The notes beneath the pieces were generated by a model. The model did not search any database and was not told the origin of the DNA. It was given only the letters and a program-made list of their open reading frames with translations. Below, piece by piece: positions 18,121 through 57,470 of a stretch of DNA of 64,000 bases. Numbering within the stretch: the first letter of the stretch is position 1; each line of letters opens with the position of its first letter. A program made the position numbers and the translations under genes. Source of the stretch: Ranitomeya imitator (Eukaryota); the NCBI RefSeq assembly GCF_032444005.1, contig NC_091285.1:661354001-661418000 (forward strand), read 5' to 3'.

Positions 18121-18221
18121 GTTCTGTAGAAGGACGTAGATCTGGGGATTTATTATGATGGAATATAGGCTGAACTGGATGGACAAATGTCTTTTTTCGG
18201 CCTTACTACTAACTATGTTAC
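17238..18221 (+). mobile_element. 5'-truncated CR1 LINE (copy 1)
   Basis: RT C-terminal motifs FADDTKL, WQMRFNNDKCKVIHMG and HMEYCVQFWAP; 3' UTR ending in CTATGTTAC repeats. Confidence 0.95.
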
Positions 18222-26089: not shown

Positions 26090-26220
26090 GGCTTTGGAGA
26101 GGAAGGACAATACCAAGATATTGATGATGTCATTGAAAAGGAAGGACAGCATCTAGATAATTGATGATGTTGTTGAAGAGAAAAGACATGCCAAAGCACT
26201 ACCTAGATATTGATGACGTC
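26090..26220. repeat. Left part of a degenerate tandem array (CCTAGATATTGATGATGTCATTGAAGAGGAAGGAC-like) that resumes at 56399
   Basis: The same unit occurs at 56399-57470; joining 26220 to 56405 restores a normal unit. Confidence 0.75.
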
Positions 26221-26251
26221 TGTTATGTTTGCTAATGACAGGTGTTATTAA
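26221..26251 (-). repeat. Terminal 27 bp (+TTAA) of a split solo LTR
   Basis: TGTTATG start preceded by GACGTC; continues in the same orientation at 55646. Confidence 0.75.
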
Positions 26252-26784
26252 CCAAGAGGCTGTTTATTGCCAACAACTCCTTCAGGTTTGCTTTTTATCT
26301 GAGACTCCATAGCCTTGAAGTGACCCGTGTTATATTACGTTGTCTTCACTGACCCCAGACGGGATCCTCTGGGAATTATTGGAAGATCAGACTCACATCA
26401 CGTTGTCTCCACCTCTTCCTCATTGTGCAAGTGAAAAACGAAGCCATCGTAGAGGTCGAACACTGTCAGGGTCTTTTCTCACCCTGTTCTGGGGGAAAGC
26501 AGACACCAGGATACCTCTGTCCTCTGTCCCGCCGTCCCGCCATACCTTTAACACTTCGGTGCACCACGCCATTAAACTATCTATTTAGGTTCCCAAAATA
26601 GTCACATATCCCAGTTATGTGAAACATCTTAAATCAGGACCCTTGTCTGGTTGCCAAACCGACTGTTTGTCATTTGCAGTCTCCTCATCTTGGAGACTGT
26701 CTATAAATTATCCGAATACACAGAGATTATCCAGGTTATTGGCTAAACGGAGTGTGACAAGAAGAAGATCACATTGTGTCCTCT

Positions 26785-26992
26785 CATACAGGAAAGATAT
26801 ATATCTTGGTACCGTGTTAGCCAGTTGATAGAAAAATATTTAGAATTGAGAGTCCTCAGTGGTTGATACCTTTTAGTGGCTAACTGAAAAGATGGTAACA
26901 AATTGCAAGCTTTCGAGACTACACATGTCTCTTCATCAGGCATAGACAAAAAGAGATTCTGAAGAATCACATAGATATTCTAAATATTTTTC
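26785..26992 (-). mobile_element. Mini Penelope/retrozyme-like insertion (208 bp) carrying a hammerhead motif
   Basis: 13-bp direct repeats CATTGTGTCCTCT (26772-26784, 26993-27005); short inverted terminal segment. Confidence 0.65.
26904..26943 (-). ncRNA. Minimal type I hammerhead ribozyme motif
   Basis: Minus strand: AUGC-CUGAUGA-A-GAGAC(AUGUGUA)GUCUC-GAAA-GCUU-GCA; palindromic helix III (AAGCUU); short 3-bp helix I. Confidence 0.7.
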
Positions 26993-27731
26993 CATTGTGT
27001 CCTCTGGTAATTCAGGACATTGGTGTTAAAAGTCATTAGGAACCCTACAACAGTTTCGGACCACCGGTGGTTCTTTCTGGTGGTGGTGGTGGTGCTGGGG
27101 GTTTAGCAACTCCACCATAATCAGTACATTCCTGGTGCCTACACGTAAACATGGAGTAAAAACTGAAATTAGGGGCGGAATTTTCCCTACAACAGGCGAG
27201 AAATGTCTCATCATTTTTAACCGCACAATTCCTCACCGATCAGAACCTAAGTGAGAAGAGCTAAAGAGACCGTCAAGCGTGCGTGGTGACAATTCATTAA
27301 AAGTCTAGGGTACTAATGGAGAAAGTTGAGTACAACGCCAGACAGAAGTGGATTGCCAGACTAATATGGACATTTTCTTCTACATATTAGATGGAAATGA
27401 GCCAACAAATGATTGCTTGTTGTCAACTTAAAATATATCTCGGTCAGTATTGGATTTTTTTTCTGCTGATGATGCATCTAATTCTAATCATTGGTGGCAA
27501 AAATCTTACATGACCGACCAGTGTTGCAAATAATAATAACTGATCTATGGGCATTCATTGGTCAAAACGATAGTTTGTTATGGTCGTTAAGGCCAAATAT
27601 CATCTGATGATTATGGCCACCATAAGTGTTGGTCTAAGTTGTAGGTTGATACCGGAAGACGGGGGCATTGCCCACTCATTGTTCATCTGTTGGCAACAAG
27701 TGAAGTAGAGGTACAACAGTGGGAGTATAGG

Positions 27732-28602
27732 TGTAAGGGGTTGTAAAGTCCACCATCTCTCACTACCCCTCAAGTTACGTCACGGTTGTATTTATTGCTG
27801 CTGTATGTATATACATTGTATATCCATGTAATGTGTATGTGTAATGTTCTTGTACTGGTATGGTGAGTGTAGTACTCAAAGTTAGCCAGAAGATGGGATA
27901 CATTATAGGTGTAGTAATAGCGCTATAAATAGTTAAATAGGATGGGTACGGTGGATAAGGCAGGAAGGACTTCCTGATAGAGTCAGTTGGGGCTAGTGCG
28001 CCAGTGCAGCTCACTTGAGCTGGCGAGCCCCGGGCAACACCGTGCCACGCAACGTTGTAGAAGAATAAGGCCCAGCCATATAGCAACAGTGCTAGTGGTG
28101 CAGTATTAGTGGGTCTGCAGTTGGTAGAAGAGGCTAAGCAGAACGGGCAGGTCGCTCATCATGTGGCAGCTTATTGCATGGGCTACCGCCCTCACAACCA
28201 GGGCGAAACGGCTGAGGGAGTCCCCAAACGGAGTAGGGCTGAACACAGAGGGATCGAAAGGTACGGTCCGTCCCGGAAGCGAGCTTAGTGACAGAGAGAG
28301 AAGGACAGGGACAGAAAAGGAGTTGCACGTTGTGAAACTTGATGTGGATGCAGGAAAGAACTCGGATGTGCTGCGTAAACAACTAAGTAAAGTTGTTGTT
28401 GTTAAAGTTGAGCTGGACTGTGTCTCCCTTTGTGTGATGCTGTCGACAAGGAGCCTTCGGCAGCCCAGGGTGGACCCTCAGGGTGTAGAGACCTAAAACA
28501 CCAGTAGGCAGAAAGAAAGGCTGTATTGTAATGTGAGGGGAGGCCAGGGTGTGATACAGGGTTTGCTCTCAGCCATGACTACCACCCTGGCTCACCCTTA
28601 CA
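27732..28602. mobile_element. Solo LTR, 871 bp
   Basis: TGTAAGGG...CCCTTACA inverted termini; perfect 4-bp TSD TAGG. Confidence 0.85.
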
Positions 28603-28779
28603 TAGGATATAGTGGTTGAAGATTTTGGAGGGTGAGGGTCAGGTGGTGATATGTTATGACCATGTCAAGTTTTCCAATAAGTCATACTTTCAGAGTTGGG
28701 CTACTACAGATTCAATGTGAATGTGAAGCAGAACAACTTTCTCCTAAAAATGCCTTGTTACTGGCCATACCCGTTTCAC

Positions 28780-28990
28780 ATCTTCTCCACACTTTATTTC
28801 CCACCACCAGAATATGACATTAAGGACAAGAAACCTGCCTTACACAACTGCTTCCAGGAGGTGTCCAAAGGCTTAGATGTCAGTATGGCAAAATTCCTAT
28901 CAATTCCAGGGGTTTGGGTGGTCTCCCAGAATTCCTGCAGCCTCTGTGCGGTTTGGGAGAGTTGGCAAGTATGCAATAGGTTGGAGAGCT
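28780..28990 (-). pseudogene. Degenerate L1 ORF2 C-terminal remnant
   Basis: QRLQEFWETTQ resembles the L1 post-zinc-finger motif; stops and indels present. Confidence 0.3.
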
Positions 28991-29062
28991 ACAAACACCA
29001 CTGAAGATCCCTTGGTATATAGTTTGGCCTGGACAGTTCTGAAAGTCAGTAAAAAGGTATAG

Positions 29063-29872
29063 TGTTATGAAAGGTAATTCAGTACCACAATAGACATAGA
29101 GGTCAGCGCACATACAGTGACCTGGCAATAACCCAAAAAACAAGAACGAGCTCTGGGACGTGGGAACTCTGTTGACCGCAATCCCTAATCCTCTCCAACC
29201 ACACTAAAGGCAGCCGTGGATTGCGCCTAACGCTTCCTATGCAACTCGGCACGGCCTGAGAAACTAGCTAGCCTGAAGATAGAAAATAAGCCTACCTTGC
29301 CTCAGAGACATACCCCAAAGGAAAAGGCAGCCCCCACATATAATGACTGTGAGTTAAGATGAAAAGACAAACGTAGAGATGAAATAGATTTAGCAAAGTG
29401 AGGCCCAACTTTCTGAACAGAGCGAGGATAGGAAAGGTAACTTTGCGGTCAACACAAAACCCTACAAAAACCACGCAAAGGGGGCAAAAAGACCCTCCGT
29501 ACCGAACTAACGGCACGGAGGTACACCCTCTGCCTCCTAGAGCTTCCAGCAAGCAGTAAAAAACAAATTGACAAGCTAGACAGAAAAAATCAGCAAACAA
29601 ATAGCAAGAGGAACTTAGCTATGCAGGGCAGCAGGCCACAGGAACGATCCAGGAGGAAACAGGTCCAATACTAGAACATTGACTGGAGGCCAGGATCAAA
29701 GCACTAGGTGGAGTTAAATAGAGCAGCACCTAACGACTTCACCACATCACCTGAGGAAGGAAACTCAGAAGCCGCAGTACCACTTTCCTCCACCAACGGA
29801 AGCTCACAGAGAGAACCAGCCGAAGTACCACTTGTGACCACAGGAGGTAGCTCTGCCACAGAATTCACAACA
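29063..29872 (-). mobile_element. Solo LTR (810 bp) of the same family as the 32821-42997 element
   Basis: Reverse-complement homology to 32821-33643; perfect 6-bp TSD GTATAG (29057-29062, 29873-29878). Confidence 0.95.
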
Positions 29873-30309
29873 GTATAGTGATTATCTTGACTTAAAGGGA
29901 TTCTCCAAGACTGTAATAAAATGGCTCCCATCGCATAATTCAAATGTTAGCTTGGCCTAGTCAGATGTCAATAAAGGCTTCAGTGTCAATAACCAACACA
30001 CCTATGACCTATTTCTCAATGAACAGAGGAGCTGTATTGTAAGCACACATACCTCTGAGGTGCCAGGAAAGGTCTGTGACAGAGAACAAATCTTCTTCTC
30101 CCTGAATCAGTACTAAATTTTTTTCTCCAGCCTCAGACCTCTCTGCACAGCGAGCCTGGCAGAAGATTTATTTCTTCTCCTGTCTCAACCCTTCTCCAGC
30201 ACCTCACCAGAATGTGTGCTGGGCTCTAGCTCCTCTGTCAGTTGAGGCATAGTTCTCATTAGCAGTGATTTTTCAGACTGTAGCCTTGCCTGACACATTA
30301 CTAGGACAG

Positions 30310-31798: not shown

Positions 31799-32820
31799 CC
31801 CACACGACACTTAATTCAATACCTAAATTGAAAATGCTATAGAGAGTCTAAACAACTGCCATACATAGCCTAAATAGTACTCAAATACAATATCCACATG
31901 GTAATGACCCAAATAATACAGTCATACATTGGATAAATATTACCTCCATATATTATTCAAATACTACTATACTGCCATATATAATCCATATAATACTACC
32001 ATTCCATATGCAAATAAAACTGCCACACAATATATTTAGGTTGTATTTTGAAATCTGGTGACAGATGCTGCTTTAAGGTAAAAATGATTAGCTTAATGAT
32101 AAAGTTCATGATTATCCAAGGTTTATATTATGAGGATCCAGTCCATGGGTGCCCCTAAGGAGATAGCGGCTGCACCCAGGCCCTGATTCTTGTGGGGGCC
32201 CACATTGCATACATGTACAATACAATATCCAAATTCTACTACTATATAGTACTCATACTGCCATATATTTCCAATACAATACTTCATTAAGAGACTAATT
32301 AATACTGTTATACAGCATCTAAATAACTGGCTCACAATGCCTAAATAATAATCCCATACAGTATGCACATAATATAATGCATATTCCGCCCAATAAATGT
32401 CGCCATACACTATTCAAATAATGCTACTAGTAGTAGAGTCCCATAAAGTGCTGCCATTCAATGCTCATATACAACACTGCTATTCAGTGTACATATAAAT
32501 CCGTCAGATATGTACACATCTATGTTTCTCAGACCAGAAAGCACGGACTAGTCACGGGTCTTCTTACTTGACTCATAACCTTATATGAGGCCGTGGTTTC
32601 AGGTAAGGAGACCCATGACTGTTCCACGCATGAGGCTGTTGAGTTCGGATTATGAGATCCGTGGCAGGTCCGTGCATTGTGGCCTATAATCGGAAGTAGG
32701 AGTCTGACTTTAAAGAGGACCTGTCACTAGAAAAAAAAGTGGCTAGTTCTTAATCTTATTTCATTCCCACTGGTCCCCTGAGTATTTTGCTTTAAAAAAA
32801 AAAAAAAATCCGTCATACAG

Positions 32821-33643
32821 TGTTGTGAATTCTGTGGCAGAGCTCCCTCCTGTGGTCACAAGTGGTACTTCGGCTGATTCTGTCTATGAGCTTCCGTTGG
32901 TGGATGTGAGTGGTACTGCGGCTTCTGAGTTTCCTTCCTCAGGTGATGTGGTGAAGTCGTTAGGTGCTGCTCTATTTAACTCCACCTAGTGCTTTGCTCC
33001 TGGCCTCCAGTCAATGTTCTAGTATTGGTCTTGCTTCCTCCTGGATCGTTCCTGTGGCCTGTCTGCTCTGCATTAGCTAAGTTTTGCTTGTGTTATTTTT
33101 GTTTGCTATTTTTTCTGTCCAGCTTGCTTTGTTGGTTTTTCTTGCTTGCTGGAAGCTCTGGGACGCAGAGGGAGCACCTCCGTACCGTTAGTCGGTGCGG
33201 AGGGTCTTGTTGCCCCCTCTGCGTGGTTGTTTGTAGGGTTTTGTGTTTACCGCAAAGCAATCTTTCCTATCCTCGGTCTGTTCAGTAAGTGGGGCCTCAC
33301 TTTGCTAAATCTATTTCATATCTGCGTTTTTATTTTCATCTCAACTCACAGTCATTATATGTGGGGGGCTGCCTTTTCCTTTGGGGGGATCTCTCTGAGG
33401 CAAGGTAGGCTTATTTTTCTATCTTCAGGGCTAGCTAGTTTCTCACTCTGTGCTCGAGGCGCATAGGTCTGGTCAGGAGCGCTCCACGGCTACCTTTAGT
33501 GTGGTTGGATAGGATTAGGGATTGCGGTCAGCAGAGTTCCCACGTCTCAGAGCTCGTCCTATGTTTTTTGGTAATTGTCAGGTCACTTTGTGTGCTCTGA
33601 ACTTTCCATGTCCATTGTGGTTCTGAATTACCTGTTCATAACA
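32821..33643 (+). repeat. 5' LTR (823 bp)
   Basis: TGTTGTG...CATAACA; TATA-like TATTTAA at 32973-32979. Confidence 0.97.
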
Positions 33644-33645
33644 GT

Positions 33646-33655
33646 ACTGGAGGCC
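33646..33655 (+). promoter_or_regulatory. Self-priming-type PBS (ACTGGAGGCC)
   Basis: Perfect reverse complement of LTR 33002-33011, 29 nt downstream of the TATA-like box; no TGG tRNA-type PBS. Confidence 0.8.
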
Positions 33656-33780
33656 CAAAGTACTAATGCTTCTCAATAGAGGGAAAAAAGAAGTTCTGAG
33701 ACCATTTTTTTTTTCTTTGCACTGTGTTTTGCCTTTTTTTTCCCCTAGACATTTGGGTGGTTCAGGACACAGGTGTAGTG

Positions 33781-36700
33781 ATGGACATTAAAGGTCTGTC
33801 TTCATGTGTGGATCATCTCACTGCAAGAGTACAAAATATTCAAGACTTTGTGGTTCAGAATTCTATGTTAGAACCAAGAATTCCTATTCCTGATTTGTTT
33901 TCTGGAGATAGAGCTAAATTTCTGAGTTTCAAAAATAATTGTAAACTGTTTCTGGCTTTGAAACCTCGCTCCTCTGGTGACCCAGTTCAACAAGTTAGGA
34001 TTATTATTTCTTTATTACGTGGCGACCCTCAAGACTGGGCATTTTCCCTTGCACCAGGAGATCTTGCATTATGTAATATTGATGCGTTTTTTCTGGCGCT
34101 CGGATTGCTGTACGATGAACCTAATTCGGTGGATCAGGCAGAGAAAAATTTGCTGGCTCTGTGTCAGGGTCAGGATGAGATAGAGATTTATTGTCAGAAG
34201 TTTAGAAAGTGGTCTGTGCTCACTCAATGGAATGAAGGTGCGCTGGCAGCTATTTTCAGAATGGGTCTCTCTGAAGCCCTTAAGGATGTCATGGTGGGAT
34301 TTCCTATGCCTGCTGGTCTGAATGAGTCTATGTCTTTGGCCATTCAGATCGGTCGACGCTTGCGTGAGCGTAAATCTGTGCACCATTTGGCGGTATTATC
34401 CGAGCATAAACCTGAGCCTATGCAGTGCGATAGGACTTTGACCAGAGTTGAACGGCAAAAACACAGACGTCAGAATGGGCTGTGTTTCTACTGTGGTGAT
34501 TCCACTCATGCTATCTCTGATTGTCCTAAGCGCACTAAGCGGTTCGCTAGGTCTGCCACCATTGGTACGGTACAGTCAAAATTTCTTTTGTCCGTTACTT
34601 TGATCTGCTCTTTGTCATCTTATTCTGTCATGGCATATGTGGATTCAGGCGCTGCCCTGAATTTGATGGACTTGGAGTATGCTAGGCGTTGTGGGTTTTT
34701 CTTGGAGCCCTTGCAGTGTCCTATTCCATTGAGAGGAATTGATGCTACGCCTTTGGCCAAGAATAAGCCTCAGTACTGGACCCAGCTGACCATGTGCATG
34801 GCTCCTGCACATCAGGAGGATATTCGCTTTCTGGTGTTGCATAATCTGCATGATGTGGTCGTGTTGGGGTTGCCATGGCTACAAGTCCATAACCCAGTAT
34901 TAGATTGGAAATCTATGTCTGTGTCCAGCTGGGGTTGTCAGGGGGTACATGGTGATGTCCCATTTCTGTCTATTTCGTCATCCACCCCTTCTGAGGTCCC
35001 AGAGTTCTTGTCTGATTACCGGGATGTATTTGATGAGCCCAAGTCCAATGCCCTACCTCCGCATAGGGATTGTGATTGTGCTATCGATTTGATTCCTGGT
35101 AGTAAGTTTCCTAAAGGTCGACTGTTTAATTTATCTGTGCCTGAGCATGCCGCTATGCGGAGTTACGTGAAGGAGTCCTTGGAGAAGGGTCATATTCGCC
35201 CGTCATCATCGCCATTGGGAACGGGGTTCTTTTTTGTGGCCAAGAAGGATGGTTCGCTGAGACCTTGTATAGATTACCGCCTTCTAAATAAAATCACGGT
35301 CAAATTTCAGTACCCCTTGCCGCTGCTATCTGATTTGTTTGCTCGGATCAAGGGGGCTAGTTGGTTCACCAAGATAGATCTTCGTGGTGCGTATAATCTT
35401 GTGCGTATTAAGCGGGGCGATGAATGGAAAACTGCATTTAATACGCCCAAGGGCCATTTTGAGTACCTAGTTATGCCATTCGGACTTGCCAATGCTCCAT
35501 CGGTGTTTCAGTCCTTTATGCATGACATCTTCCGAGAGTACCTGGATAAATTCCTGATTGTATACTTGGATGATATTTTGGTCTTCTCGGATGATTGGGA
35601 GTCTCATATGAAGCCGGTCAGAATGGTGTTCCAGGTCCTGCGTGCTAATTCTTTGTTTGTGAAGGGATCAAAGTGTCTCTTTGGTGTTCAGAAGGTTTCA
35701 TTTTTGGGGTTCATTTTTTCCCCTTCTACTATCGAGATGGACCCTGTTAAGGTCCAGGCCATCTATGATTGGACTCAGCCGACATCTCTGAAGAGTCTGC
35801 AAAAGTTCCTGGGCTTTGCTAATTTTTATCGTCGCTTCATCTGTAATTTTTCTAGTATTGCTAAACCATTGACCGATTTGACCAAGAAGGGTGCTGATGT
35901 GGTCAATTGGACTTCTGCTGCTGTGGAAGCTTTTCAAGAGTTAAAGTGTCGTTTTTCTTCTGCCCCTGTGTTGTGTCAACCAGATGTTTCGCATCCGTTC
36001 CAGGTCGAGGTTGATGCTTCTGAAATTGGAGCGGGGGCTGTTTTGCCGCAAAGAGGTTCTGATTGCTCGGTGATGAAGCCATGCGCCTTCTTTTCCAGGA
36101 AATTTTCGCCTGCTGAGCAAAATTATGATGTTGGCGATCGAGAGTTGCTGGCCATGAAGTGGGCATTCGAGGAGTGGCGTCATTGGCTTGAAGGAGCTAA
36201 GCATTGCGTGGTGGTCTTGACTGATCACAAGAACTTGACTTATCTCGAGTCTGCCAAACGGTTGAATCCTAGACAGGCTCGTTGGTCGCTGTTTTTCTCC
36301 CGTTTTGACTTTGTGGTTTCGTACCTTCCGGGCTCTAAAAATGTGAAGGCGGATGCCCTGTCTAGGAGTTTTGTGCCCGACTCTCCGGGTTTGTCTGAGC
36401 CGGCGGGTATTCTCAAAGAGGGAGTAATTTTGTCTGACATCTCCCCTGATTTGCGGCGGGTGCTGCAAAAATTTCAGGCTAATAAACCTGATCGTTGCCC
36501 AGCAGAGAAACTGTTTGTCCCTGATAGGTGGACGAATAAAGTTATCTCTGAGGTTCATTGTTCGGTGTTGGCTGGTCATCCTGGAATCTTTGGTACCAGA
36601 GATTTAGTGGCTAGATCCTTTTGGTGGCCGTCTCTGTCGCGGGATGTGCGTTCTTTTGTGCAGTCCTGTGGGATTTGTGCTCGGGCTAAGCCCTGCTGTT

Positions 36701-37154
36701 CTCGTGCCAGTGGGTTGCTTTTGCCCTTGCCGGTCCCGAAGAGGCCTTGGACACATATCTCTATGGATTTTATTTCGGATCTCCCCGTCTCTCAAAAAAT
36801 GTCGGTCATTTGGGTGGTTTGTGATCGCTTCTCTAAGATGATCCATTTGGTACCCTTGTCTAAATTACCTTCCTCCTCTGATTTGGTGCCATTGTTCTTC
36901 CAGCATGTGGTTCGTTTACATGGCATTCCAGAGAACATCGTTTCTGACAGAGGTTCCCAGTTTGTTTCGAGGTTTTGGCGAGCCTTTTGTGCTAGGATGG
37001 GCATTGATTTGTCTTTTTCCTCGGCTTTCCATCCTCAGACAAATGGCCAGACCGAACGAACCAATCAGACCTTGGAAACATATCTGAGATGCTTTGTTTC
37101 TGCTGATCAGGATGATTGGGTGTCCTTCTTGCCTTTGGCTGAGTTCGCCCTTAA
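33781..37154 (+). CDS. pol: Gag-Pol polyprotein, 5' part (gag, CCHC, protease, RT, RNase H, most of integrase)
   Basis: CFYCGDSTHAISDC, YVDSGA, YLDDIL, TDHKNL, H..GHPG..C..C and integrase core; first ATG at 33781; frame open to the TTAA insertion point. Confidence 0.95.
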
Positions 37155-37719
37155 CCCCTTTACCCCCAAGGGTGGTTTGCACGTCAATGACCAGGCCAAT
37201 TTTTACAATTCTGACCACTGTCCCTTTATGAGGTTATAACTCCGAAACGCTTCAACGGATCCTGGTGATTCTGACATTGTTTTCTCGTGACATATTGTAC
37301 TTCATGATAGTGGTAAAATTTCTTTGATAGTACCTGCGTTTATTTGTGAAAAAAATGGAAATTTGGCGAAAATTGTGAAAATTTCGCAATTTTCAAACTT
37401 TGAATTTTTATGCAATTAAATCACAGAGATATGTCACACAAAATACTTAATAAGTAACATTTCCCACATGTCTCCTTTACATCAGCATAATTTTGGAACC
37501 AATTTTTTTTTTGTTAGGGAGTTATAAGGGTTAAAAGTTGACCAGCAATTTCTCATTTTTACAACACCATTTTTTTTTAGGGACCACGTCTCATTTGAAG
37601 TCATTTTGAGGGGTCTATATGATAGAAAATGCCCAAGTGTGACACCATTCTAAAAACTGCACCCCTCAAGGTGCACAAAACCACATTCAAGAAGTTTATT
37701 AACCCTTCAGGTGTTTAAT

Positions 37720-39600
37720 AGGAATTTTTGGAATGTTTAAATAAAAATGAACATTTAACTTTTTTACACAAAAAATATACTTCAGCTCCAATTTGTTTTA
37801 TTTTACCAAGGGTAACAGGAGAAAATGGACCCCAAAAGTTGTTGTCCAATTTGTGCTGAGTACGCTGATACCCCATATGTGGCAGTAAACCACTGTTTGG
37901 GCGCATGGGAGAGCTCGGAAGGGAAGGAGCGCCGTTTGACTTTTCAATGCAAAATTGACAGGAATTGAGATGGGACGCCATGTTGCGTTTGGAGAGCCAC
38001 TGATGTGCCTAAACATTGAAACCCCCCACAAGTGACACCATTTTGGAAAGTAGACCCCCTAAGGAACTTATCTAGAGGTGTGGTGAGCACTTTGACCCAC
38101 CAAGTGCTTCACAGAAGTTTATAATGCAGAACCGTAAAAATAAAAAATCATATTTTTTCACAAAAATTATATTTTTGCCCCCAATTTTTTATTTTTCCAA
38201 GGGTAAGAGAAGAAATTGGACCTCAAAAGTTGTTATCCAATTTGTCCTGAGTACGCTGATACCCCATATGTGGCAGTAAACCACTGTTTGGGCGCATGGG
38301 AGAGCTCGGAAGGGAAGAAGCGCCGTTTGACTTTTCAATGCAAAATTGACAGGAATTGAGATGGGACGCCATGTTGTGTTTGGAGAGCCACTGATGTGCC
38401 TAAACATTGAAACCCCCCACAAGTGACACCATTTTGGAAAGTAGACCCCCTAAGGAACTTATCTGGATGTGTGGTGAGCACTTTGACCCACCAAGGGCTT
38501 CACTGAAGTTTATAATGCAGAGCCATAAAAATAAAACAAAATTTTTTTCCCACAAAAATTATTTTTTATCCCCCAGTTTTGTATTTTCCCTAGGGTAACA
38601 GGAGAAATTGGACCCCAAAAGTTGTTGTCCAATTTGTCCTGAGTACGCTGATACCCCATATGTGGGGGGGAACCACCGTTTGGGCGCATGGGAGGGCTCG
38701 GAAGGGAAGGAGCGCCATTTGGAATGCAGACTTAGATGGAATGGTCTGCAGGCGTCACATTGCGTTTGCAGAGCCCCTAATGTACCTAAACAGTAGAAAC
38801 CCCCCACAAGTGACACCATTTTGGAAAGTAGACCCCCTAAGGAACTCATCTTGATGTGTTGTGAGAGCTTTGAACCCCCAAGTATTTCACTACAATTTAT
38901 AACGCAGAGCCGTGCAAATAAAAAATATTTTTTTTTCCACAAAAATTATATTTTAGCCCCCAGTTTTGTATTTTTCCAAGGTTAGCAGGAGAAATTGGAC
39001 CCTAAATGTTGTTGTCCAATTTGTCCTGAGTACGCTGATACCCGATATGTGGGGGGGAACCACCGTTTGGGCGCATGGGAGGGCTCGGAAGGGAAGGAGC
39101 ATCATTTGGAATGCAGACTTAGATGGATTGGTCTGCAGGCGTCACATTGCGTTTGCAGAGCCCCTAATGTACCTAAACAGTAGAAACCCCCCACAAGTGA
39201 CCCCATATTGGAAACTAGACCCCTCAATGAACTTATCTAGATGTGTTGTGAGAACTTTGAACCCCCAAGTGTTTCACTACAGTTTATAACGCAGAGCCGT
39301 GAAAATAAAAAATCTTTTTGTTTTCCCACAAAAATTATTTTTTAGCCCCCAGTTTTGTATTTTCCCAAGGGTAACAGGAGAAATTGGTCCACAAAAGTTG
39401 TTGTCCAATTTGTCCTGAGTACGCTGATACCCCATATGTGAGGGTAAACCCCTGTTTGGGCACACAGGAGAGCTCGGAAGGGAAGGAGCACTGTTTTACT
39501 TTTTCAACGCAGAATTGGCTGGAATTGAGATCGGACGCCATGTCGTGTTTGGAGAGCCCCTGATGTGCCGAAACAGTGGAAACCCCCCAATTATAACTGA
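37720..39600. repeat. ~390-bp tandem repeat, 5 diverged copies, inside the piggyBac-like element
   Basis: GAGTACGCTGATACC recurs at 37858, 38249, 38641, 39028 and 39417. Confidence 0.92.
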
Positions 39601-40014
39601 AACCCTAATCTAAACACACCCCTAACCCTAATTCCAACGGTAACCCTAACCACACCTCTAACCCAGACACACCCCTAACCCTAATCCCAACCCTATTCCC
39701 AACTGTAAATGTAATCTAAACCCTAACCCTAACTTTAGCCCCAACCCTAACTNNNNNNNNNNNNNNNNNNNNNNNNNNNNNNNNNNNNNNNNNNNNNNNN
39801 NNNNNNNNNNNNNNNNNNNNNNNNNNNNNNNNNNNNNNNNNNNNNNNNNNNNNNNNNNNNNNNNNNNNNNNNNNNNNNNNNNNNNNNNNNNNNNNNNNNN
39901 NNNNNNNNNNNNNNNNAGCCCTAACCCTAACCCTAGCCCTAACCCTAGCCCTAGCCCTAACCCTAACCCTAGCCCTAACCCTAGCCCTAACCCTAGCCCT
40001 AACCCTAGCCCTAA
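39601..40014. repeat. Interstitial telomere-like array (CCCTAA/CCCTAG variants) spanning an assembly gap
   Basis: (CCCTAA)/(CCCTAG)n on both sides of the Ns at 39753-39917. Confidence 0.9.
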
Positions 40015-45500: not shown

Positions 45501-45584
45501 CGGGGCATATACTATGGAGCATCTTATGGAGCAGCGTATGGGGCATAAGGATTGGAGCAGTAAATTAAAGAACGATGCCGCAGA

Positions 45585-46020
45585 ATGGGAGCAGCACATG
45601 ACAGAACGGGGGTGCAGGATGGGAGCAGCACATGACAGAACGGGGGCGCAGGATGGGAGCAGCACATGACAGGATGGGAGCAGCAAATGACAGAACGGGG
45701 GCGCAGGATGGGAGCAGCACATGACAGAACGGGGGCGCAGGATGGGAGCAGCACATGACAGGATGGGAGCAGCAAATGACAGAATGGAGGCGCAGGATGG
45801 GAGCAGCACATGACAGAACGGGGGCGCAGGATGGGAGCAGCACATGACAGAACGGGGGCGCAGGATAGGAGCAGCACATGACAGGATGGGGATGCAGGAT
45901 GGAGCAGCACATGACAGAATGGGGGCGCAGGATGGAGCAGCACATGACAGGATGGGGACGCAGGATGGAGCAGCACATGACAGGATGGGGACGCAGGATG
46001 GAGCAGCACATACCAGGATG
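45585..46020. repeat. Minisatellite (GGATGGGAGCAGCACATGACAGAACGGGGGCGCA-like) inside the Helitron
   Basis: Direct tandem copies. Confidence 0.9.
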
Positions 46021-46718
46021 GAGACCATATACCAATATAAATGCTCGCCACCCGGGCGTAGAACGGGTTCAATAGCTAGTCTATCAATATAAAAAAAGAA
46101 ATAACATGATTGCTAAACAGCGTAAGGAGGAAAAATTCAAAACGTCAGAATTGCAGTTTTTTGGTCGCCGCTACATTGCAATAAAATGCAATAACGGGCG
46201 ATAAAAAAAATCATGTCTGCACCAAAATGGTATCAATAAAAACGTCAGCTCAACGCACAAAAATAAGCCCTCTCCCAACCCCAGATCACAGAAAATGGAG
46301 ACCCTACACATCTCTGAAAATGGCGGCATTTTTTTTTTTTTTTTACCAAAGTTTGGATTTTTTTTCACCACTTAGATAAAAAAGAATCTAGACATGTTTG
46401 GTGTCTATGAACTCATAATGACCTGGAGAATCATAATGACAGCTCAGTTTTAGCATTTAGTGAACATGGTAAACAAAAAAAAAAAAAAAAAACAACTGTG
46501 GAATCGCACTTTTTTTGCAATTTCACCACACTTGGAAGTTTTTTCCTGTTTTCCAAGTACACGATATGTTAAAACCAACGGTGATGTTCAAAAGTACAAC
46601 ATGTCCCGCAAAAAACAAGCCCTCACATGGCCAAAATGACCGAAAAATAAAAAGGGAAGAAGGGGAGCAAAAAACGAAAACGCAAAAACGAAAATACCTC
46701 TGGTCATGAAGTGATTAA

Positions 46719-48179
46719 AGAAGTCATCCACCTGTTCTCTTCAACATATTCATTAGTGATCTGGTAGAAGGTTTACACAGTAAAATATCGATATTTGCAG
46801 ATGATACAAAACTATGTAAAGCAGATAATACAAGAGAAGATAGTATTCTGCTACAGATGGATCTGGATAGGTTGGAAACTTGGGCTGAAAGGTGGCAGAT
46901 GAGGTTTAACAATGATAAATGTAAGGTTATACACATGGGAAAAAGGAATCAATGTCACCATTACACACTGAACGGGAAACCACTGGGTAAATCTGACAGG
47001 GAGAAGGACTTCGGGATCCTAGTTAATGATAAACTTACCTGGAGCAGCCAGTGCCAGGCAGCAGCTGCCAAGGCAAACAGGATCATGGGGTGCATTAAAA
47101 GAGGTCTGGATACACATGATGAGAGCATTATACTGCCTCTGTACAAATCCCTAGTTAGACCGCACGTGGAGTACTGTGTCCAGTTTTGGGCACCGCTGCT
47201 CAGGAAGGATATAATGGAACTAGAGAGAGTACAAAGGAGGGCAACAAAATTAATAAAGGGGATGGGAGAACTACAATACCTAGATAGATTAGCGAAATTA
47301 GGATTATTTAGTCTAGAAAAAAGACGACTGAGGGGCGATCTAATAACCATGTATAAGTATATAAGGGGACAATACAAATATCTCGCTGAGGATTTGTTTA
47401 TACCAAGGAAGGTGACGGGCACAAGGGGGCATTCTTTGCGTCTGGAGGAGAAAAGGTTTTTCCACCAACATAGAAGAGGATTCTTTACTGTTAGGGCAGT
47501 GAGAATCTGGAATTGCTTGCCTGAGGAGGTGGTGATGGCGAACTCAGTCGAGGGGTTCAAGAGAGGCCTGGATGTCTTCCTGGAGCAGAACAATATTGTA
47601 TCATACAATTATTAGGTTCTGTAGAAGGACGTAAATCTGGGGATTTATTATGATGGAATATAGGCTGAACTGGATGGACAAATGTCTTTTTTTCGGCCTT
47701 ACTAACTATGTTATGTTACTATGTTATGTTACTTGGACAACTTCTTGTCACACCCCTTGCTTGGTTGGCCCCAATAAAATAATAAAGCCTATACTCATCT
47801 CCTATGCCGGTGCCATTCCCGCGGTGTCGGCAGTCGCTCTTCTCGTAGCCCTCGTGTGGTACGTTGTGACACATGACACAGGCGCCCAATCAACGCTGGC
47901 GTCACTCTCCCCGTCTTCAGACAAATTGAACAGGAAGAGGAAGTCCTGGATCAGCGGCAGCCCGGACTTCCTCTTCATGATCGATTTGTCCGAAGGTGAT
48001 GCCAGAGTTGATTGGTTGCCGGCGTCATGTGTCACAACACACCACATGAGAGCCCCGGGGAGAGTGAGTGGCGACACTGCGGGAATGGCTCCAGCGCCGG
48101 AGGGGAGTATAGGCTTTATTATTTTTTGGGGGCCAACATTTTGATCAATAAGGGGTTGTCATAGTAGTGGACAGCCCCT
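46719..48179. mobile_element. T2-type MITE whose left TIR is interrupted by CR1 copy 2
   Basis: AGAAGTCATCCAC|CR1|TACTTGGACAAC matches the reverse complement of the right end (AGGGGCTGTCCACTACTATGACAAC); TTAA at 46715 and 48180; palindromic body 47740-48179. Confidence 0.7.
46730..47732 (+). mobile_element. 5'-truncated CR1 LINE (copy 2), roughly 98% identical to copy 1 by visual count
   Basis: Same RT C-terminal frame (tracked ORF 46857-47615) and same 3' tail. Confidence 0.95.
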
Positions 48180-48399
48180 TTAAGGTAAAAATGTTTGGGT
48201 TAAGGGTAAAGTCCCTAGTGGTCTATACCGGCAAAGGTTTACATGCTGGAGATATAGGCAATGAAGACCCCTGAGGAAAGGACCCTTAAACAACGGTCCT
48301 ATATGTTGGGACAACTACGGTAACTGTTTTGCCTATTAGAGTAATACAGAATAGAAACAAATGTCTTTGTGTAAGAGGAAATATTTGTCTTCCGAGACA

Positions 48400-50335: not shown

Positions 50336-51395
50336 CATTGCCTGCTAGGTCGCCAGACCAGCTCTGCTTTTGAACCTCCTATACAACTCAGCTCTGCTTC
50401 ACTGGTTCCTCATCACTGAAACTTTTTGCTTCCTTGTGGGCTTCAGCTTTGTTTCATAAGATCCCTAGATTCTCATTTTCTCCTAACAAAGCACCTTCCA
50501 TTGTTTCACTGGAGACCGAACACATCATATCCATCATTCTTCTAGGAATAGAAATAAAACCCGTAATATCGTGTCACAAGAAGAGAAGTCTTCACATGTC
50601 TCTAATATATGATATGAGGACTCCTTGTGGCATTATATGACGGGTTTTTTCTATAACTAGAAGAATAATGGATTTGATCTGTTTGGTCTCCAGTCACGGA
50701 AATCATGGGAATCACAGGGGGTCTTCAAATAGACTTTTGCTATCCAAATAATACCGCCATATAGTAACCAATTCTCAGACATGCTATCATTAAGTGCCTA
50801 AAGAAAATGTCCACCTAGTGTCTGAATATTTTGCTTTTAGATAAAAATAATTAGGTTAGAAGGTGAAGTTCCTGGTGGTCTTGGTTGGTGACACTTTACA
50901 TGCTGAGAATACAGCCCATTGTGACCCATAACAAAACCGGGGTGGACAATGGCCCTTTTTGCCACCTCCCAACCGCCTCCGAGTCTCTCCATTTGTATTT
51001 ATGCACATCATAATGTGTTTGTGCTCAGTTGAGCGCTGACCAACGTCTCGTATAATAAGTGAAGGATGAAAGACCCACAATCCTGAAATAACAGGTCATA
51101 GTTCGGTATAATATTCACTACAGTACGGTTTTATGTTGTGTTTAATCCCAATCTTGTTTTGTTAACGTCTCCTGTCTCCAGTATCACATGTGGTTCTGTT
51201 TATGCATCAAAGTTATGATATTGGCTTGGCATCCGAGCGCCTGACGCTGGAGCGAGCCGTCCGGCTTTTTTCTAATTGGACTCCAGCATTCTTTCTCACA
51301 AAACGCTCAAGTCTAGTGTAAACCGGATGGCGGTATAGCAGATGTCTATACAAACTGTATGTGAGTCTAGTGAAGGACAACAGAAGTCAATATTA

Positions 51396-53044
51396 CAGTT
51401 AAGTCCATATATATTTGGACAGAGACAAGATTTTTTTAATTTTGGTTATAGACATTACCACAATGAATTTTAAACAAAACAATTCAGATGCAGTTGAAGT
51501 TCAGACTTTCAGCTTTCATTTGAGGTTATCCACATTAAAATTGGATGAAGGGTTTAGGAGTTTCAGCTCCTTAACATGTGCCACCCTGTTTTTAAAAGGA
51601 CCAAAAGTAATTGGACAGATTCAATAATTTTAAATAAAATGTTCATTTATAGTACTTGGTTGAAAACCCTTTGTTGGCAATGACTGCCTGAAGTCTTGAA
51701 CTCATGGACATCACCAGACGCTGTGTTTCCTCCTTTTTGATGCTCTGCCAGGCCTTCACTGCGGTGGTTTTCAGTTGCTGTTTGTTTGTGGCCTTTCTGT
51801 CTGAAGTTTAGTCTTTAACAAGTGAAATGCTGCTCAATTGGGTTGAGATCAGGTGACTGACTTGGCCAATGAAGAATATTCCACTTCTTTGCTTTAATAA
51901 ACTCCTGGGTTGCTTCGGCTTTATGTTTTGGGTCTTTGTCCATCAGTAGTATGAAACGGCGACCAATCCGTTTGGCTGCATTTGGCTGGATTTGAGCACA
52001 CAGTATGGCGGCTCTGAATACCTCAGAATTCATTCGGCTGCTTCTGTCCTGTGTCACATCATCAATAAACACTAGTGACCCAGTGCCACTGCCAGCCATG
52101 CATGCCCAAGCCATCACACTGCCTCCGCCGTGTTTTACAGATGATGTGGTATGCTTTGGATCATGAGCTGTACCACGCCTTCGCCATACTTTTCTCTTTC
52201 CATCATTCTGGTAGAGGTTGATCTTGGTTTCATCTGTCCAAAGAATGTTCTTCCAGAACTGTGCTGGCTTTTTTAGATGTTTTTTAGCAAAGTCCAGTCT
52301 AGCCTTTTTATTCTTGATGCTTATGAGTGGCTTGCACCGTGCAGTGAACCCTCTGTAGTTACTTTCATGCAGTCTTCTCTTTATGGTAGATTTGGATATT
52401 GATACGCCGACCTCCTGGAGAGTGTTGGTCACTTGGTCGGCTGATGTGAAGGGGTTTCTCTTCACCATAGAGATTATTCTGCGATCATCCACCACTGTTG
52501 TCTTCTGTGGGCGCCCAGGTCTTTTTGCATTGATGAGTTCACCAGTGCTTTCTTTCTTTCTCAGGATGTACCAAACTGTAGATTTAGCCTCTCCTAATAT
52601 TGTAGCAATTTCTCGGATGGGTTTTTTCTGTTTTTGCAGCTTAAGGATGGCTTGTTTCACCTGTATGGAGAGCTCCTTTGACCGCATGTTTACTTCACAG
52701 CAAAACCTTCCAAATGCAAGCACCACACCTCAAATCTACTCCAGGCCTTTTATCTGCTTAATTGAGAATGACATAACGAAGGGATTGCCCACACCTGTCC
52801 ATGAAATAGCCTTGGGGTCAATTGTCCAATTACTTTTGGTCCCTTTAAAAACAGGGTGGCACATGTTAAGGAGCTGAAACTCCTAAACCCTTCATCCAAT
52901 TTTAATGTGGCTACCCTCAAATGAAAGCTGAAAGTCTGAACTTCAACTGCATCTGAATTGTTTTGTTTAAAATTCATTGTGGTAACGTATATAACCAAAA
53001 TTAGAAAAATGTTGTCTCTGTCCAAATATATATGAACCTAACTG
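51396..53044 (-). mobile_element. Tc1-family DNA transposon, 1649 bp, long (~220 bp) TIRs
   Basis: TA flanks; TIR CAGTTA(A/G)GT(C/T)CATATATATTTGGACAGAGAC; transposase ORF. Confidence 0.96.
51643..52687 (-). pseudogene. Tc1 DD34E transposase with a 1-nt frameshift just after the catalytic Glu
   Basis: MRSKELS..., GRPQKTT, WTDETK, MDKDPKH and SPDLNPIE (34 residues between D and E); C-terminus resumes in another frame ([19 protein letters not shown]...). Confidence 0.92.
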
Positions 53045-53129
53045 TATATGGGCAAGTTTATGGAGTGACCAACAGGGAATCACCTAGGGGACTTCAGGAG
53101 TAAAATAAAACCACCTGCTATTATTGAGC

Positions 53130-55110
53130 GGGGTAGTATGGTAGTATTATTTTTGCAATGAATAGTAGTATGATGTGGGAAGTGTAGGGCAGTATTATGT
53201 GAGCTCTCTAAGACAGTACTATTTGGTTATTGCCACTAAGGGCTTGTTTTCACATGCGAGAAACACGTCCGTGTCTCGCATGTGGAAACGAAGTTCTGGC
53301 GCCGGCACTCCGGAGTGGAGCGTGCGGCTGCATGTGTTGCTATGCGGCCGCCCTCTCTGCTCCGGAGTGCCGGCGCCAGAACTTCGTTTCCACATGCGAG
53401 ACACGGACGTGTTACTCGCATGTGGAAACAAGCCCTTACCTGGACACTGTATTGTAGTATTATGTGAGTTGTATATGGAAGCATTATCTTGGTACAATAT
53501 GGCTAAATCATTTAGGGTTTGTAAGGGAGCATTATCTGGATGGTACATGTTGTTTGGAAACTATGTGGTGATATTATGCGGGCTGTATATGACTGTATTA
53601 TCTTGATACTATGTGGCAGTATTTTGGGGGCTCTATAAGACATTATTTGGGCATCAAGTGGTGGTATCATGAATGCAGTATATGGCAGTATTATCTTGGT
53701 ACTATGTGGCAGTATTTTTGGGGTGCTATAATTGAGTATTATTTTGATATCACATATTATTACCATGGGGTGGTAGCATATGTGCGGTATATGGCAGTAT
53801 TATCTTGACACTATATGTCCATATTTTTGTTTTGTAATGGGGTATTATTTGGATACTGCAAATTATTCTGACAGTATATTGGTAGTATAATGTGGGCATT
53901 GTATGGCATTATCATCTTGGTACTGTATATTGGTGTTATGTGTGCTCTGTAAGGTAGTATTATTTGGCCACTCCACAATATTTGGCACTATTAAATGGCA
54001 TTATTTGGATATTATAACAGAATATTATTTGAATAGGGCACAATATTTGGGCACTCTCTGGTGGCATTATGCAGACTGTTTATGGCAGTATTATCTTGGT
54101 ACTATATGACCTTATTATGTGGGCTTATAAGGAAGTATCTAAGCAATGCCCATTATTTGGGCTCTATGTGGTAGTATTATGCATCCATATATGGCAGTAT
54201 TATCTTGGTAATATATGGCTAAATCATTTAGGGTCTGTAAGGGAGCATGATTTGGATAGTAATGGTATTTGGAAACTATGCGGTGATATTATGCAGACTG
54301 TATATGACAGTATTATCTTAATACTATGTGGCAGTATTTTGTGAGCTCTATAAGACATTATTTGGGAATCAACTGGTGGTATCATGTATGTACTATATGG
54401 CAGTATAATCTTGGTACTATGTGGCAGTATTTTTTGGGCTCTGTAAGGGAGTATTATTTGGATATTGCACATTATTTGGACATCATGGGGTGGTAGCGTA
54501 TGTGCGGTATATGACAGTATTATCTTGATACTATATGTCCATATTATTTTTGTTTTATAATGGGGTATTATTTGGATACTGCAAATCTTGTGGACCTTGT
54601 ATGGCATTATTATCTTGGTACTGTATATTGGTGTTATGTGTGCTCTGTAAGGTAGTATTATTTGGCCACTCCACAATATTTGACACTATATAATGGTCTT
54701 ATGTGGGTATTATAACAGAATGTTATTTGAATAGTGTACAATATTTGGGCACTATCTGGTGGTATTATGCAGACTGTTTATGTCAGTATTTTCTTGGTAC
54801 TATATGGCCGTATTATGTGGGCTTATAAGGGAATATTATTTAGGCAATGCACATTATTTGTCCACTATGTGGTAGCATTATGCATCCATATGTGGTAATA
54901 TTATGCATCCATATATGGCAGTATTATCTTGGTACTATATGGCGGTATGCTGCTCATTAACTGGGCACTATTTAGTGGCATTATATGGCTCAATATGGCA
55001 GTATTGTCTTGGTACTATGTGATGAGATTATTTGGGCTTTATAACGACATGTTATTTGGATGCAGCTCTTTATTTGAGCACTGTATGATAATAATATTTT
55101 GAGACTATAT
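53130..55110. repeat. Degenerate AT-rich satellite (TATATGGCAGTATTATCTTGGTAC motif) with a ~710-bp higher-order duplication
   Basis: ATATGGCTAAATCATTTAGGG recurs at about 53499 and 54212; related reverse-complement sequence at about 31850-32450 and 58460-58660. Confidence 0.75.
53240..53435. mobile_element. Palindromic Harbinger-like MITE (~196 bp)
   Basis: TIR GGGCTTGTTT(T/C)CACATGCGAG; TAA/TTA flanks; whole element folds back. Confidence 0.75.
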
Positions 55111-55645
55111 GGCAGTGTGGAAGTAGCAAGGTTCATAGGAGCAGGGATTTTACTGGAAATTCTCACAGCTTTTCTCCATTCTGGCTCAATTACAGCAGGG
55201 GATAACAGATTCCTCTGTATCTTTAAAAAAAAATCCACAATGGAAAATGCTTTTTTTTTTTTAAAAACCACAAGAATAAGAACCAAAAGTGTAAAATATG
55301 TGTGTATGCCTTGTAAACGTGGTCGCTCGCACATTTCATGGACCATGGAGGAGGACACAGCTGTGTTTATTTCCAAGGTCGTCTCGAGCATTCAGCACTG
55401 AAGACGAGCCGCCTGCACTGGATGTATGAAGTCAGCAGTGTGCGCACAGCAAGAGCTGAACTCAAAGGTTTCTCTTCGGGGGCTCCCAGATGTGTGCCGC
55501 AGCAAATTCTTGTGTGGTCACAATATCACTTAGAAATTACTCCTTTTATACTACCTAGGGCAGTGATAGAGAACCTTATAGAGACCGAGCGCCCAAACTG
55601 CAACCCAAGACCCATTTATTTATCGCAAAGTGCCAACACGGTTGT

Positions 55646-56398
55646 TTAAGGCAATCCAGAAACACAGTGTGCTTAGCGATCAGAGCGCACACAGTGATCT
55701 GACAAATACCCAAAAATACAAGAACGAGCTCTGAGACGTGGAAACTCTGTAGACTGCACACCTGATCCTATCCTAAACACAACTAAAAGCGGCTGTGGAT
55801 TGCGCCTAACAACTACCTAGGCAACTCGGCACAGCCTAAGAAACTAGCTAGCCTGAAGATAGAAAAATAGGCCTGACTTGCCCCAGAGAAATTCCCCAAA
55901 GGAAAAGGCAGCCCCCCACATATAATGACTGTGAGTAAGATGAAAAGACAAAACGTAGGGATGAAATAGATTCAGCAAAGTGGGGCCCGATATTCTAGGA
56001 CAGAGAGAGGACAGTAAAGCGAACTTTGCAGTCTACAAAAAACCCTAAAGCAAAACCACGCAAAGGGGGCAAAAAAAACCCACCGTGCCGAACTAACGGC
56101 ACGGCGGTACACCCTTTGCGTCTCAGAGCTTCCAGCAAAACAAAAGACAAGCTGGACAGAAAAAAAGCAACAAAAAAGCAAAAGGCACTTAGCTATACAG
56201 AGCAGCAGGTCACAGGAACAATCAGGAGAAGCTCAGATCCAACACTGAAACATTGACAAGGAGCAAGGATAGCAGCATCAGGCGGAGTTAAGTAATGAAG
56301 CAGTTAACGAGCTCACCAGAACACCTGAGGGAGGAAGCTCAGAAGCTGCAGTACCACTTGTGACCACAGGAGTGAATTCAGCCACAGAATTCACAACA
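55646..56398 (-). mobile_element. Main part of the split solo LTR (same superfamily as 29063-29872)
   Basis: Ends GAATTCACAACA followed by GACGTC (56399-56404); lacks its own TG terminus, which lies at 26221. Confidence 0.9.
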
Positions 56399-57470
56399 GA
56401 CGTCATTGAAGTTGAAGGACCTGACGAGGCAGAACTTAGATATTGATGAAATAATTGAAGATGAAGGACTTGGTGAGACAGTACCTAGATATTGATTATG
56501 TCATTTAAGAGGAAGAACTTGTAAGGCAGTACCTAGACATTGATGATGTCATGGAAAAAGAAGGACCTGATGATGTTGTTGATGAAGAGAAAGGACTTGG
56601 CAGGGCAGTATCTAGATCTTGATTAAGTAATTGAAGACAAATTACCTGGTGGGGCTGTGCCTAGAAATTGATGAGGTCCTGACAGGACAATATCTAGATA
56701 TTGAAGAAGAAAGATTTGGGAGGACAGCACCTAGCTAAATTGATGATGCCTTTAAACAGGAAGGGCCAATGAGAGCAGTAACTAGATATTAATTCTTTCG
56801 TTGAAGAGGAAAGACATGGCAGGACAGTACCAAGGTATTCATGACGTCATTTAAAAGGAAGGACTTGTGAGGGAAGTACCTAGACATTGATGATGTCCTG
56901 GCAGGGCAATATCTAGATATTGAAGAAGAAGGATTTGGGATGATAGCACCTAGCTATAGATAATGTCATAGAAGAGGAAGGACCAGGGAGGGCAGTACTT
57001 AAATAATGATGATGTCATGAAAGAGGAGAACCTGGCAGGGCAGTACCTAGATAGTGGAGAGGAAAGATCTGGTGGGGCAGCACCTAGATAGTGGAGAGGA
57101 AAGATCTGGTGGGGCAGCACCTAGATAGTGGAGAGGAAAGATCTGGTGGGGCAGCACCTAGATAGTGGAGAGGAAAGATCTGGTGGGGCAGCACCTAGAT
57201 AGTGGAGAGGAAAGATCTGGTGGGGCAGCACCTAGATAGTGGAGAGGAAAGATCTGGTGGGGCAGCACCTAGATAGTGGAGAGGAAAGATCTGGTGGGGC
57301 AGCACCTAGATAGTGGAGAGGAAAGATCTGGTGGGGCAGCACCTAGATAGTGGAGAGGAAAGATCTGGTGGGGCAGCACCTAGATAGTGAAGATAAAAGA
57401 TCTAGTGGGGCAGTACCTATATATTGATGATATCATTGAAGAGGAAGGACAGAATCTTGATATTGATGAT
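56399..57470. repeat. Degenerate tandem array containing a homogeneous 37-bp sub-array (about 57047-57400, ~9 copies)
   Basis: Unit CTGGTGGGGCAGCACCTAGATAGTGGAGAGGAAAGAT. Confidence 0.92.

Follow-up and report, generated by a model that had tools for sequence, protein, structure and literature searches.

The window analyzed here, a stretch of 64,000 nucleotides of the Ranitomeya imitator genome (NCBI RefSeq assembly GCF_032444005.1, contig NC_091285.1, forward-strand positions 661,354,001 to 661,418,000), contains a solo long terminal repeat (LTR) of the Ty3/Gypsy family, here called LTR A, whose two pieces stand about 30 kb apart on either side of a 29.4-kb block of DNA flanked by TTAA. The LTR retains its target-site duplication (TSD), the left arm of the block is single-copy, and in a related frog this arm is found in a different context. 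The block seems to be a one-off relocation of ordinary single-copy DNA into the LTR, and among the mechanisms that might have moved it we favor piggyBac-type TTAA cleavage acting on DNA that lacks terminal inverted repeats (TIRs), to which we give a probability of about 0.5. The features are listed in Table 1, in positions of the window.

A solo LTR in two pieces within a satellite array

The host array is a degenerate satellite of ~45 bp, starting near 26075 and ending at 57426, whose monomer reads ...GATATTGATGA(C/T)GTCATTGAA... and which is interrupted at 26221-56398. Left of 26221 the satellite terminates in GATGACGTC, right of 56398 it picks up with GACGTCATTGAAG, and the interruption is bracketed by two copies of GACGTC. 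Deletion of 26221-56404 brings a single satellite monomer back in phase, which implies that GACGTC is a real 6-bp target duplication. The first-pass annotation of this DNA had given the same TSD, junction coordinates and strings, which stood on re-reading, and had proposed that removal of the LTR rebuilds one tandem array, as the monomer phase confirms.

Table 1. Features at the locus and inside the inserted block (positions in the window)
Feature	Position	Strand	Remarks
Left host satellite with left TSD copy GACGTC (26215-26220)	26075-26220	.	Phase restored if 26221-56404 is removed
LTR A, tip of 31 nt	26221-26251	-	3'/U5-side end in true orientation; plus-strand start TGTTATG, end TTAA (26248-26251)
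Inserted block, 29.4 kb	26252-55645	.	Ordinary DNA with many nested transposable elements; left arm 26252-29050 single-copy save interspersed repeats
Extremely high-copy repeat of ~190 bp in left arm	26786-26973	.	Summed word depth 1e5-1e6 in four frog runs
Solo LTR B, of the LTR A family	29063-29875	-	Own 6-bp TSD GTATAG
Full-length Ty3/Gypsy chromovirus	32821-43001	+	TSD ATACAG/ATACGG (5/6)
Non-coding piggyBac-type element within the Gypsy integrase	37155-41485	+	TTAA TSD at 37151-37154 and 41486-41489
Young reverse-transcriptase fragment of a long interspersed element	46719-47713	+	97.8% identical to 17238-18220
Tc1/mariner element	51394-53046	-	224-bp TIRs; 304-aa transposase reading-frame piece
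Degenerate ~24/48/114-bp satellite	53430-55116	+	Core GGCAGTATTATCTTGGTACTATATG
LTR A, body	55646-56398	-	Starts at right TTAA (55646-55649), ends CACAACA; 78-82% identical to LTRs B, C and D
Right TSD copy GACGTC (56399-56404) with continuation of host satellite	56399-57426	.	

A BLAST search of the window with 55646-56398 returned three further LTR copies (B, C and D), to which this right piece aligns from their ninth base onward, the first ~8 nt being missing. The missing start, TGTTATG, is found at 26221, adjoining the TSD, and the two pieces add up to 780 nt (31 + 749), which agrees with the earlier proposal of one 780-bp LTR split ~30 kb apart and homologous to a sibling LTR at 29063. 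The orientation of the family, TGTTGTG...CATAACA, was taken from the gag-pol strand and the polypurine tract of the full copy at 32821-43001, and it places LTR A, LTR B and the 31-nt tip on the minus strand, with the tip being the 3' end of the LTR. The outer shell has the TG...CA termini (TGTTATG at 26221, CACAACA at 56398) and the 6-bp TSD of a Ty3/Gypsy solo LTR, and it is homologous to the LTRs of an element (32821-43001) that encodes gag, protease (PR), reverse transcriptase (RT), RNase H (RH) and integrase (INT) in Gypsy order. It is an ordinary Ty3/Gypsy-family solo LTR on the minus strand, cut in two. Metagenome scans with the LTR tip and with the invariant LTR core gave no matches.

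The two pieces might also be read as the remains of a full-length or non-autonomous LTR element on the minus strand, with LTR A as its complete 5' LTR, the block as its internal region and the 3' LTR deleted down to 31 nt. Illegitimate recombination commonly truncates such elements, and a gapped alignment of TGTT at 55643-55646 with the LTR start is possible. However, tblastn and blastn searches of the minus strand of 26252-55645 with the resident internal region gave no gag/pol or internal match, LTR A has no convincing primer-binding site beside it and 55645 is adjoined by none of TGG type, 55560-55649 is not significantly similar to the tip, and the supposed internal region is single-copy host DNA present in another context in the related frog (see below), all of which makes this explanation very improbable. 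Since the sequence upstream of 55646 is unlike the tip, LTR A carries no tip of its own, and no LTR likeness beyond ~30 nt was detected in 26221-26620. An apparent resemblance of 55610-55649 to the tip proved no better than that of random windows.

TTAA junctions and the context of the block in a related frog

Contigs of four public runs (Logan contigs), which show presence better than absence, were compared with 25300-29050, i.e., with the left junction only. Run X1 represents the species of the window (organism A), X3 a related frog (organism B, or frog B) and X7 organism C. One organism-A contig spans 26222-26815 and crosses the junction between tip and arm with three differences from the assembly, which implies that reads of another haplotype or individual contain this junction too. 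The contig starts exactly at the first 31-mer leaving the tip (26222), as would be expected if the 31-mer 26221-26251, TTAA included, were multi-copy and shared with many other LTR copies. Summed word depth in X1 rises from 10-16 in the surroundings to 1427 in the bin 26182-26307; scans for tRNA genes and Rfam families in the left junction region found nothing, which argues against a small RNA gene as the source of this depth. An X7 contig links the tip to a different upstream flank (before 26218), and the tip bin is of high depth in X7 as well. The contig break at 26222, the high-depth bin and this one X7 contig, with no intact copy among them, suggest indirectly that intact LTRs of the subfamily may begin with the sequence 26221-26251.

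Run X7 comprises 107 Mb, and it contains contigs identical to single-copy parts of the arm at 26470-26683 and 28156-28263, along with a depth of 932 at the LTR-tip bin that is very high relative to the repeat 26786-26973. This pattern suggests that the run may not be random shotgun DNA, and its depths are unfit as copy numbers.

The arm of organism A (26308-26685 and 27064-27690) lies on a single contig at a depth of 10.9-15, compared with 16-20 in the flanks, and this undoubled depth on one contig argues that there is no second copy. The left 500 bp of the block are single-copy in both species, with word depths of 10.9 and 19.6 and flanks at 14-20. Frog B is 3-5% (~4%) diverged from the window, in flank and arm alike. 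Its contig of 2925 nt corresponds to 25302-26217, beyond which it carries 789 nt that do not resemble the window from 26218 onward. In a second, single-copy contig of 696 nt (depth 19.6), the first 144 nt do not resemble 26104-26247, and the part that follows corresponds to 26248-26784 with 15 mismatches. The depth of the bin 26182-26307 in X3 (13.3) is the sum of these two contigs and is fully explained by them, which implies that nothing in frog B covers the tip. Judging from these contigs, frog B appears to lack the LTR at this satellite site and to carry the arm in a different context, perhaps at another locus, where the homology begins at TTAA. The LTR insertion would then postdate the split between A and B, or at least be absent in B, and the sharing of the arm with frog B implies that the DNA of the block predates this split. 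The first-pass annotation had described old DNA within a younger LTR, which fits an arm that frog B has in another context without the LTR tip.

The window alone would allow the break anywhere in 26228-26252; both TGTTT (26226-26230 and 55643-55647) and TTAA recur on the right. It is the cross-species contigs and the k-mer graph that place the break at TTAA (26248-26251 and 55646-55649). Two alternative breaks, one with a 5-nt TSD of TGTTT and one with an imperfect repeat of 10-11 nt, were ruled out by the start of the frog-B homology at 26248 and the break of the organism-A contig at 26222. Two random breakpoints would share a 4-nt direct repeat with a probability of ~0.0045, and the frequency of TTAA is 0.0038.

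The ends of the block read TTAA-CCA... (CCAAGAGG...) and ...CGGTTGT-TTAA, not CCC...GGG. Between them there is no inverted match of at least 9 nt and no terminal poly(A), they have no likeness to the TIR of the resident piggyBac-type element, and neither terminus, read by eye, has the features of a Helitron (5' TC, 3' CTRR, subterminal hairpin, insertion between A and T). In denying the block TIRs, poly(A) and Helitron ends the first-pass annotation was right on all three. Pfam scans of 30 open reading frame (ORF) pieces of the block returned Gypsy, Tc1 and LINE (long interspersed element) domains only, the arms being without Pfam matches; no transposase of DDE_Tnp_1_7 type was found among the ORF pieces scanned, and a word search with the ORF 26319-26585 near the left junction yielded no protein. 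The block thus shares the TTAA duplication with piggyBac and piggyBac-like elements (PBLE) and has neither CCC...GGG TIRs nor a transposase gene or repeated family; with respect to Kolobok, judged on TSD and TIR alone, TTAA is present and TIRs are absent. Since TIRs, similarity to the resident TIR and a transposase gene at the ends are all absent, canonical piggyBac or Kolobok membership fails.

A giant non-autonomous family of TTAA transposons, piggyBac- or Kolobok-like and with ends that escape recognition, would account for the TTAA on both sides, and large piggyBac-derived elements do exist in fish. The single-copy status of the left 500 bp in two species and the lack of TIRs and of a transposase gene at the ends make such a family extremely improbable. 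The earlier proposal that a large block of ordinary DNA had been moved can be kept insofar as this DNA is ordinary and older than the LTR insertion; the multi-copy mobile unit or giant cargo element that it also entertained finds no support in the left terminal 500 bp, which are single-copy in both species and show no TIR.

Serial nesting, in which the 29.4 kb were built up by successive insertions of transposable elements (TEs) into the solo LTR and frog B was rearranged on its own, is in keeping with a block rich in nested TEs: a solo LTR, a miniature inverted-repeat transposable element (MITE) enclosing a Gypsy element that encloses a TTAA element, a Tc1 element, a LINE piece and hairpin MITEs. 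The outermost layer (26252-26785 and 27064-27690), however, has a single copy in each species, and in frog B, where its divergence is orthologue-like, it adjoins neither tip nor satellite. A TE young enough to have entered a lineage-specific LTR should be multi-copy, and two frog-B-specific breaks would have to coincide with both edges of the tip. We consider serial nesting improbable: with a single-copy layer touching the LTR, nesting of TEs cannot explain the block, nor is the block a repeated giant element. A persisting donor copy, as expected of a segmental duplication or of microhomology-mediated break-induced replication (MMBIR), was not found in organism A, where 26308-26685 and 27064-27690 are represented by one contig at undoubled depth. 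The presence of only one copy in organism A makes the event look like cut-and-paste and not like duplication.

The assembly has a gap of N letters at 39753-39916, within the telomere-like tract of the TTAA element at 37155-41485. The two sides of the gap are linked by three nested criteria lying within the GACGTC pair, namely the ends and TSD of the TTAA element, the phase of the Gypsy ORF, and the Gypsy LTR pair with its 5/6 TSD. The codon phase of Gypsy pol continues over the TTAA element, with 2 nt before it and the third codon position after it (by arithmetic only, there being no joined ORF), and no reading frame passes through the gap itself. The order of the letters and their continuity over the gap are supported, the length of the tract not being fixed by the run of N. 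A misjoin or a wrongly scaffolded gap could be suspected because of this gap within the span and because the join of satellite to tip (26106-26221) is uncovered by any listed contig. Against such an artefact stand the read-derived contig that crosses the tip/arm junction with its own three differences and a nesting that is self-consistent at three levels (satellite phase and TSD; Gypsy LTR pair and TSD; TTAA element and ORF phase), and a shared string of 31 nt cannot mislead a long-read assembler. An assembly error is hard to credit on this evidence.

Proposed relocation by TTAA cleavage and its alternatives

We infer that the block moved whole in one event, that its donor site was lost and that a transposase was involved. 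In the course of events that we propose, a Ty3/Gypsy-family LTR element whose subfamily is abundant in this frog would have inserted on the minus strand into the ~45-bp satellite with the 6-bp TSD GACGTC, after the split from frog B, and would have been reduced to a solo LTR. This LTR would then have been opened at a TTAA 27-31 nt from its tip, and ordinary single-copy DNA of ~19-29 kb would have been pasted in with TTAA on both sides. The DNA was presumably taken out of its old place, as one copy is left here and frog B keeps the DNA in another context behind TTAA. The size range reflects the resident Gypsy element, whose LTR difference of 1.1% is below the ~4% divergence of A and B, which indicates entry after the split; according to whether this entry followed or preceded the move, the block would have measured ~19 or ~29 kb when it was moved.

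The cuts would have been made by piggyBac-type chemistry, leaving 4-nt TTAA overhangs. Because the block has no TIRs, two routes were considered. In the first, a transposase would use very poor cryptic ends. In the second, which is chemically simpler, a fragment with TTAA overhangs, released for instance by excisions on either side, would be ligated into a piggyBac excision gap in the LTR; such a ligation would explain why no transposon end remains. TTAA is met three times, at the target (from the contig break), on the donor side (in frog B) and at the right junction, and it is this triple occurrence, together with the single-copy outcome and a setting in which two TTAA-flanked piggyBac-type insertions reside inside the block, that points to piggyBac-type cleavage. 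That TTAA cutting relocated tens of kb of TIR-less host DNA from TTAA to TTAA in a vertebrate germline with a hyperactive piggyBac, e.g., by ligation into a piggyBac excision gap, we put forward tentatively, as possible rather than probable.

Several points weigh against relocation by TTAA cleavage. The block lacks TIRs, and its ends resemble neither CCC...GGG nor the TIR of the resident piggyBac-type element; there is no ORF for a TTAA transposase at the block ends. The single TTAA presumed at this point of the intact LTR is deduced from where a contig breaks off. The contig support is indirect, coming from Logan contigs, and covers the left junction only, and we are dealing with a single case.

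These features would also suit repair without any transposase, in which an excised fragment or a re-integrating circle was taken up at a double-strand break in the LTR (perhaps with a 4-nt stagger, as made for example by topoisomerase II). The joining would have used end joining or 4 nt of microhomology, and TTAA would be no more than this microhomology. In favor of repair, TTAA is a short, AT-rich motif, TIRs are absent from the block ends, and the single-copy status suits an excised fragment; a circle that arose and re-integrated by way of a single 4-nt homology would also yield this structure. Such repair would nevertheless have to meet TTAA three times independently (target, frog-B donor side and right junction), at a chance of ~0.004 each, ordinary end joining does not duplicate 4 target bases, and the genome has TTAA-cutting transposons, with TTAA-flanked piggyBac-type elements inside the block itself. 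Repair of this kind appears rather unlikely to us, though it is the main rival of piggyBac-type chemistry.

Among known systems, piggyBac is distinguished by its specificity for TTAA and its seamless excision (PMC7351741). The locus is similar to piggyBac and PBLE in the insertion at TTAA and the TTAA flanks, in the one copy left, as in cut-and-paste, and in the piggyBac-type elements resident in the block. It differs in that the block has no CCC...GGG TIRs, subterminal repeats, transposase gene or repeated family, and in that its cargo is ~19-29 kb of ordinary host DNA. In maize, alternative transposition of Ac/Ds (with reversed ends or of hybrid type) and composite insertions have been described (PMC3744419, PMC9910405, bioRxiv 10.1101/2020.08.10.245175). 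There, too, large stretches of ordinary host DNA are shifted or rearranged in one-off events by a transposase that acts on the ends of different copies; however, transposon termini persist at the breakpoints of Ac/Ds products, whose TSDs are the 8-bp ones of hAT elements, whereas here no transposon end is present at either junction. Insertional translocations and templated insertions by end joining or MMBIR are likewise one-off events involving a large non-mobile segment with short junction microhomology, but MMBIR is duplicative while only one copy is found here, and one and the same tetranucleotide at the target, the donor and both junctions would be unexpected. With ordinary TE nesting the locus shares the normal solo-LTR shell with its TG...CA ends and 6-bp TSD and the many TEs inside; the layer at the LTR, in contrast, is single-copy DNA older than the LTR insertion, which is impossible by nesting. 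The locus is best filed as a TE-associated insertional translocation, of which this is one case.

If TTAA chemistry was responsible, the locus would show that in a natural germline a cut-and-paste transposase can move large pieces of ordinary DNA that have no transposon ends. Insertional translocations could then be driven by a transposase and yet contain no transposon sequence, so that ordinary TE annotation would miss them. Scarless relocations of this type may lie hidden in large numbers in the giant genomes of frogs that have young piggyBac families, and a search for single-copy DNA inserted from TTAA to TTAA could reveal them. Domesticated piggyBac enzymes are known to do something similar in ciliates, and the like is suspected in tumors; to our knowledge, there is no documented case of it as a source of structural variation in vertebrate evolution. 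If the block was instead inserted by repair, the locus would represent an ordinary, neatly dated insertional translocation.

Other elements in the block and the window

The full-length Ty3/Gypsy element is delimited by LTR C (32821-33647) and LTR D (42176-43001), which are 98.9% identical. Its gag-PR-RT-RH-INT region lies in 33700-37154, its SH3 and chromodomain part in 41490-42180, and a polypurine tract precedes LTR D; the ORFs match RVT_1, RT_RNaseH, Integrase_H2C2, rve, SH3_Tf2-1 and Chromo. The element is enclosed by a MITE with TIRs at 32750-32793 and 43198-43240, and it encloses in turn the piggyBac-type TTAA element, which has the TIR CCCCTTT.../...AGAGGGG, a 387-bp array at 37756-39589 and the telomere-like tract. 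TIRs, LTR pair and TTAA element ends together bear out the nesting of MITE, Gypsy and piggyBac-like element that had been noticed at first pass.

A further TTAA-flanked element may be present at 43275-48203, with TTAACCCC at 43275 and GGGTTAA at 48197, although its ends are not clearly inverted repeats. This region contains a 291-bp palindromic/tandem repeat (44691-45499), a 34-bp array (45548-46021) and the LINE fragment, which is represented by two 987-bp copies, one inside the block (46730-47713) and one outside (17238-18220). The identity of the two copies indicates that the fragment is young; since it is the sole RT fragment in the block, the old decayed L1 sequence reported there at first could not be substantiated.

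The repeat at 26786-26973 reaches a summed word depth of ~9e5 in X1, 1.2e6 in X3 and 6e5 in run X8, and sharp clusters of loose ends are seen at 26786/26831 and 26947/26973 in four frog runs. Depth and clusters together suggest a very abundant short element, a MITE or a short interspersed element (SINE), that is common to several species.

The satellite with the core GGCAGTATTATCTTGGTACTATATG is also present in inverted orientation in the left arm, at 31909-32429 (minus strand), and hardly elsewhere in the window. This inverted pair in the arms of the block might go back to an old inversion or to a palindromic layout of the moved DNA. A near-perfect hairpin MITE of 202 bp (53237-53438), 89% self-complementary, is inserted in the degenerate satellite. 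Outside the block, a second Gypsy-type pol lies at 7-2229 on the minus strand; it shares 42.5% identity, across 743 aa, with the pol of the element at 32821-43001 and runs past the start of the window.

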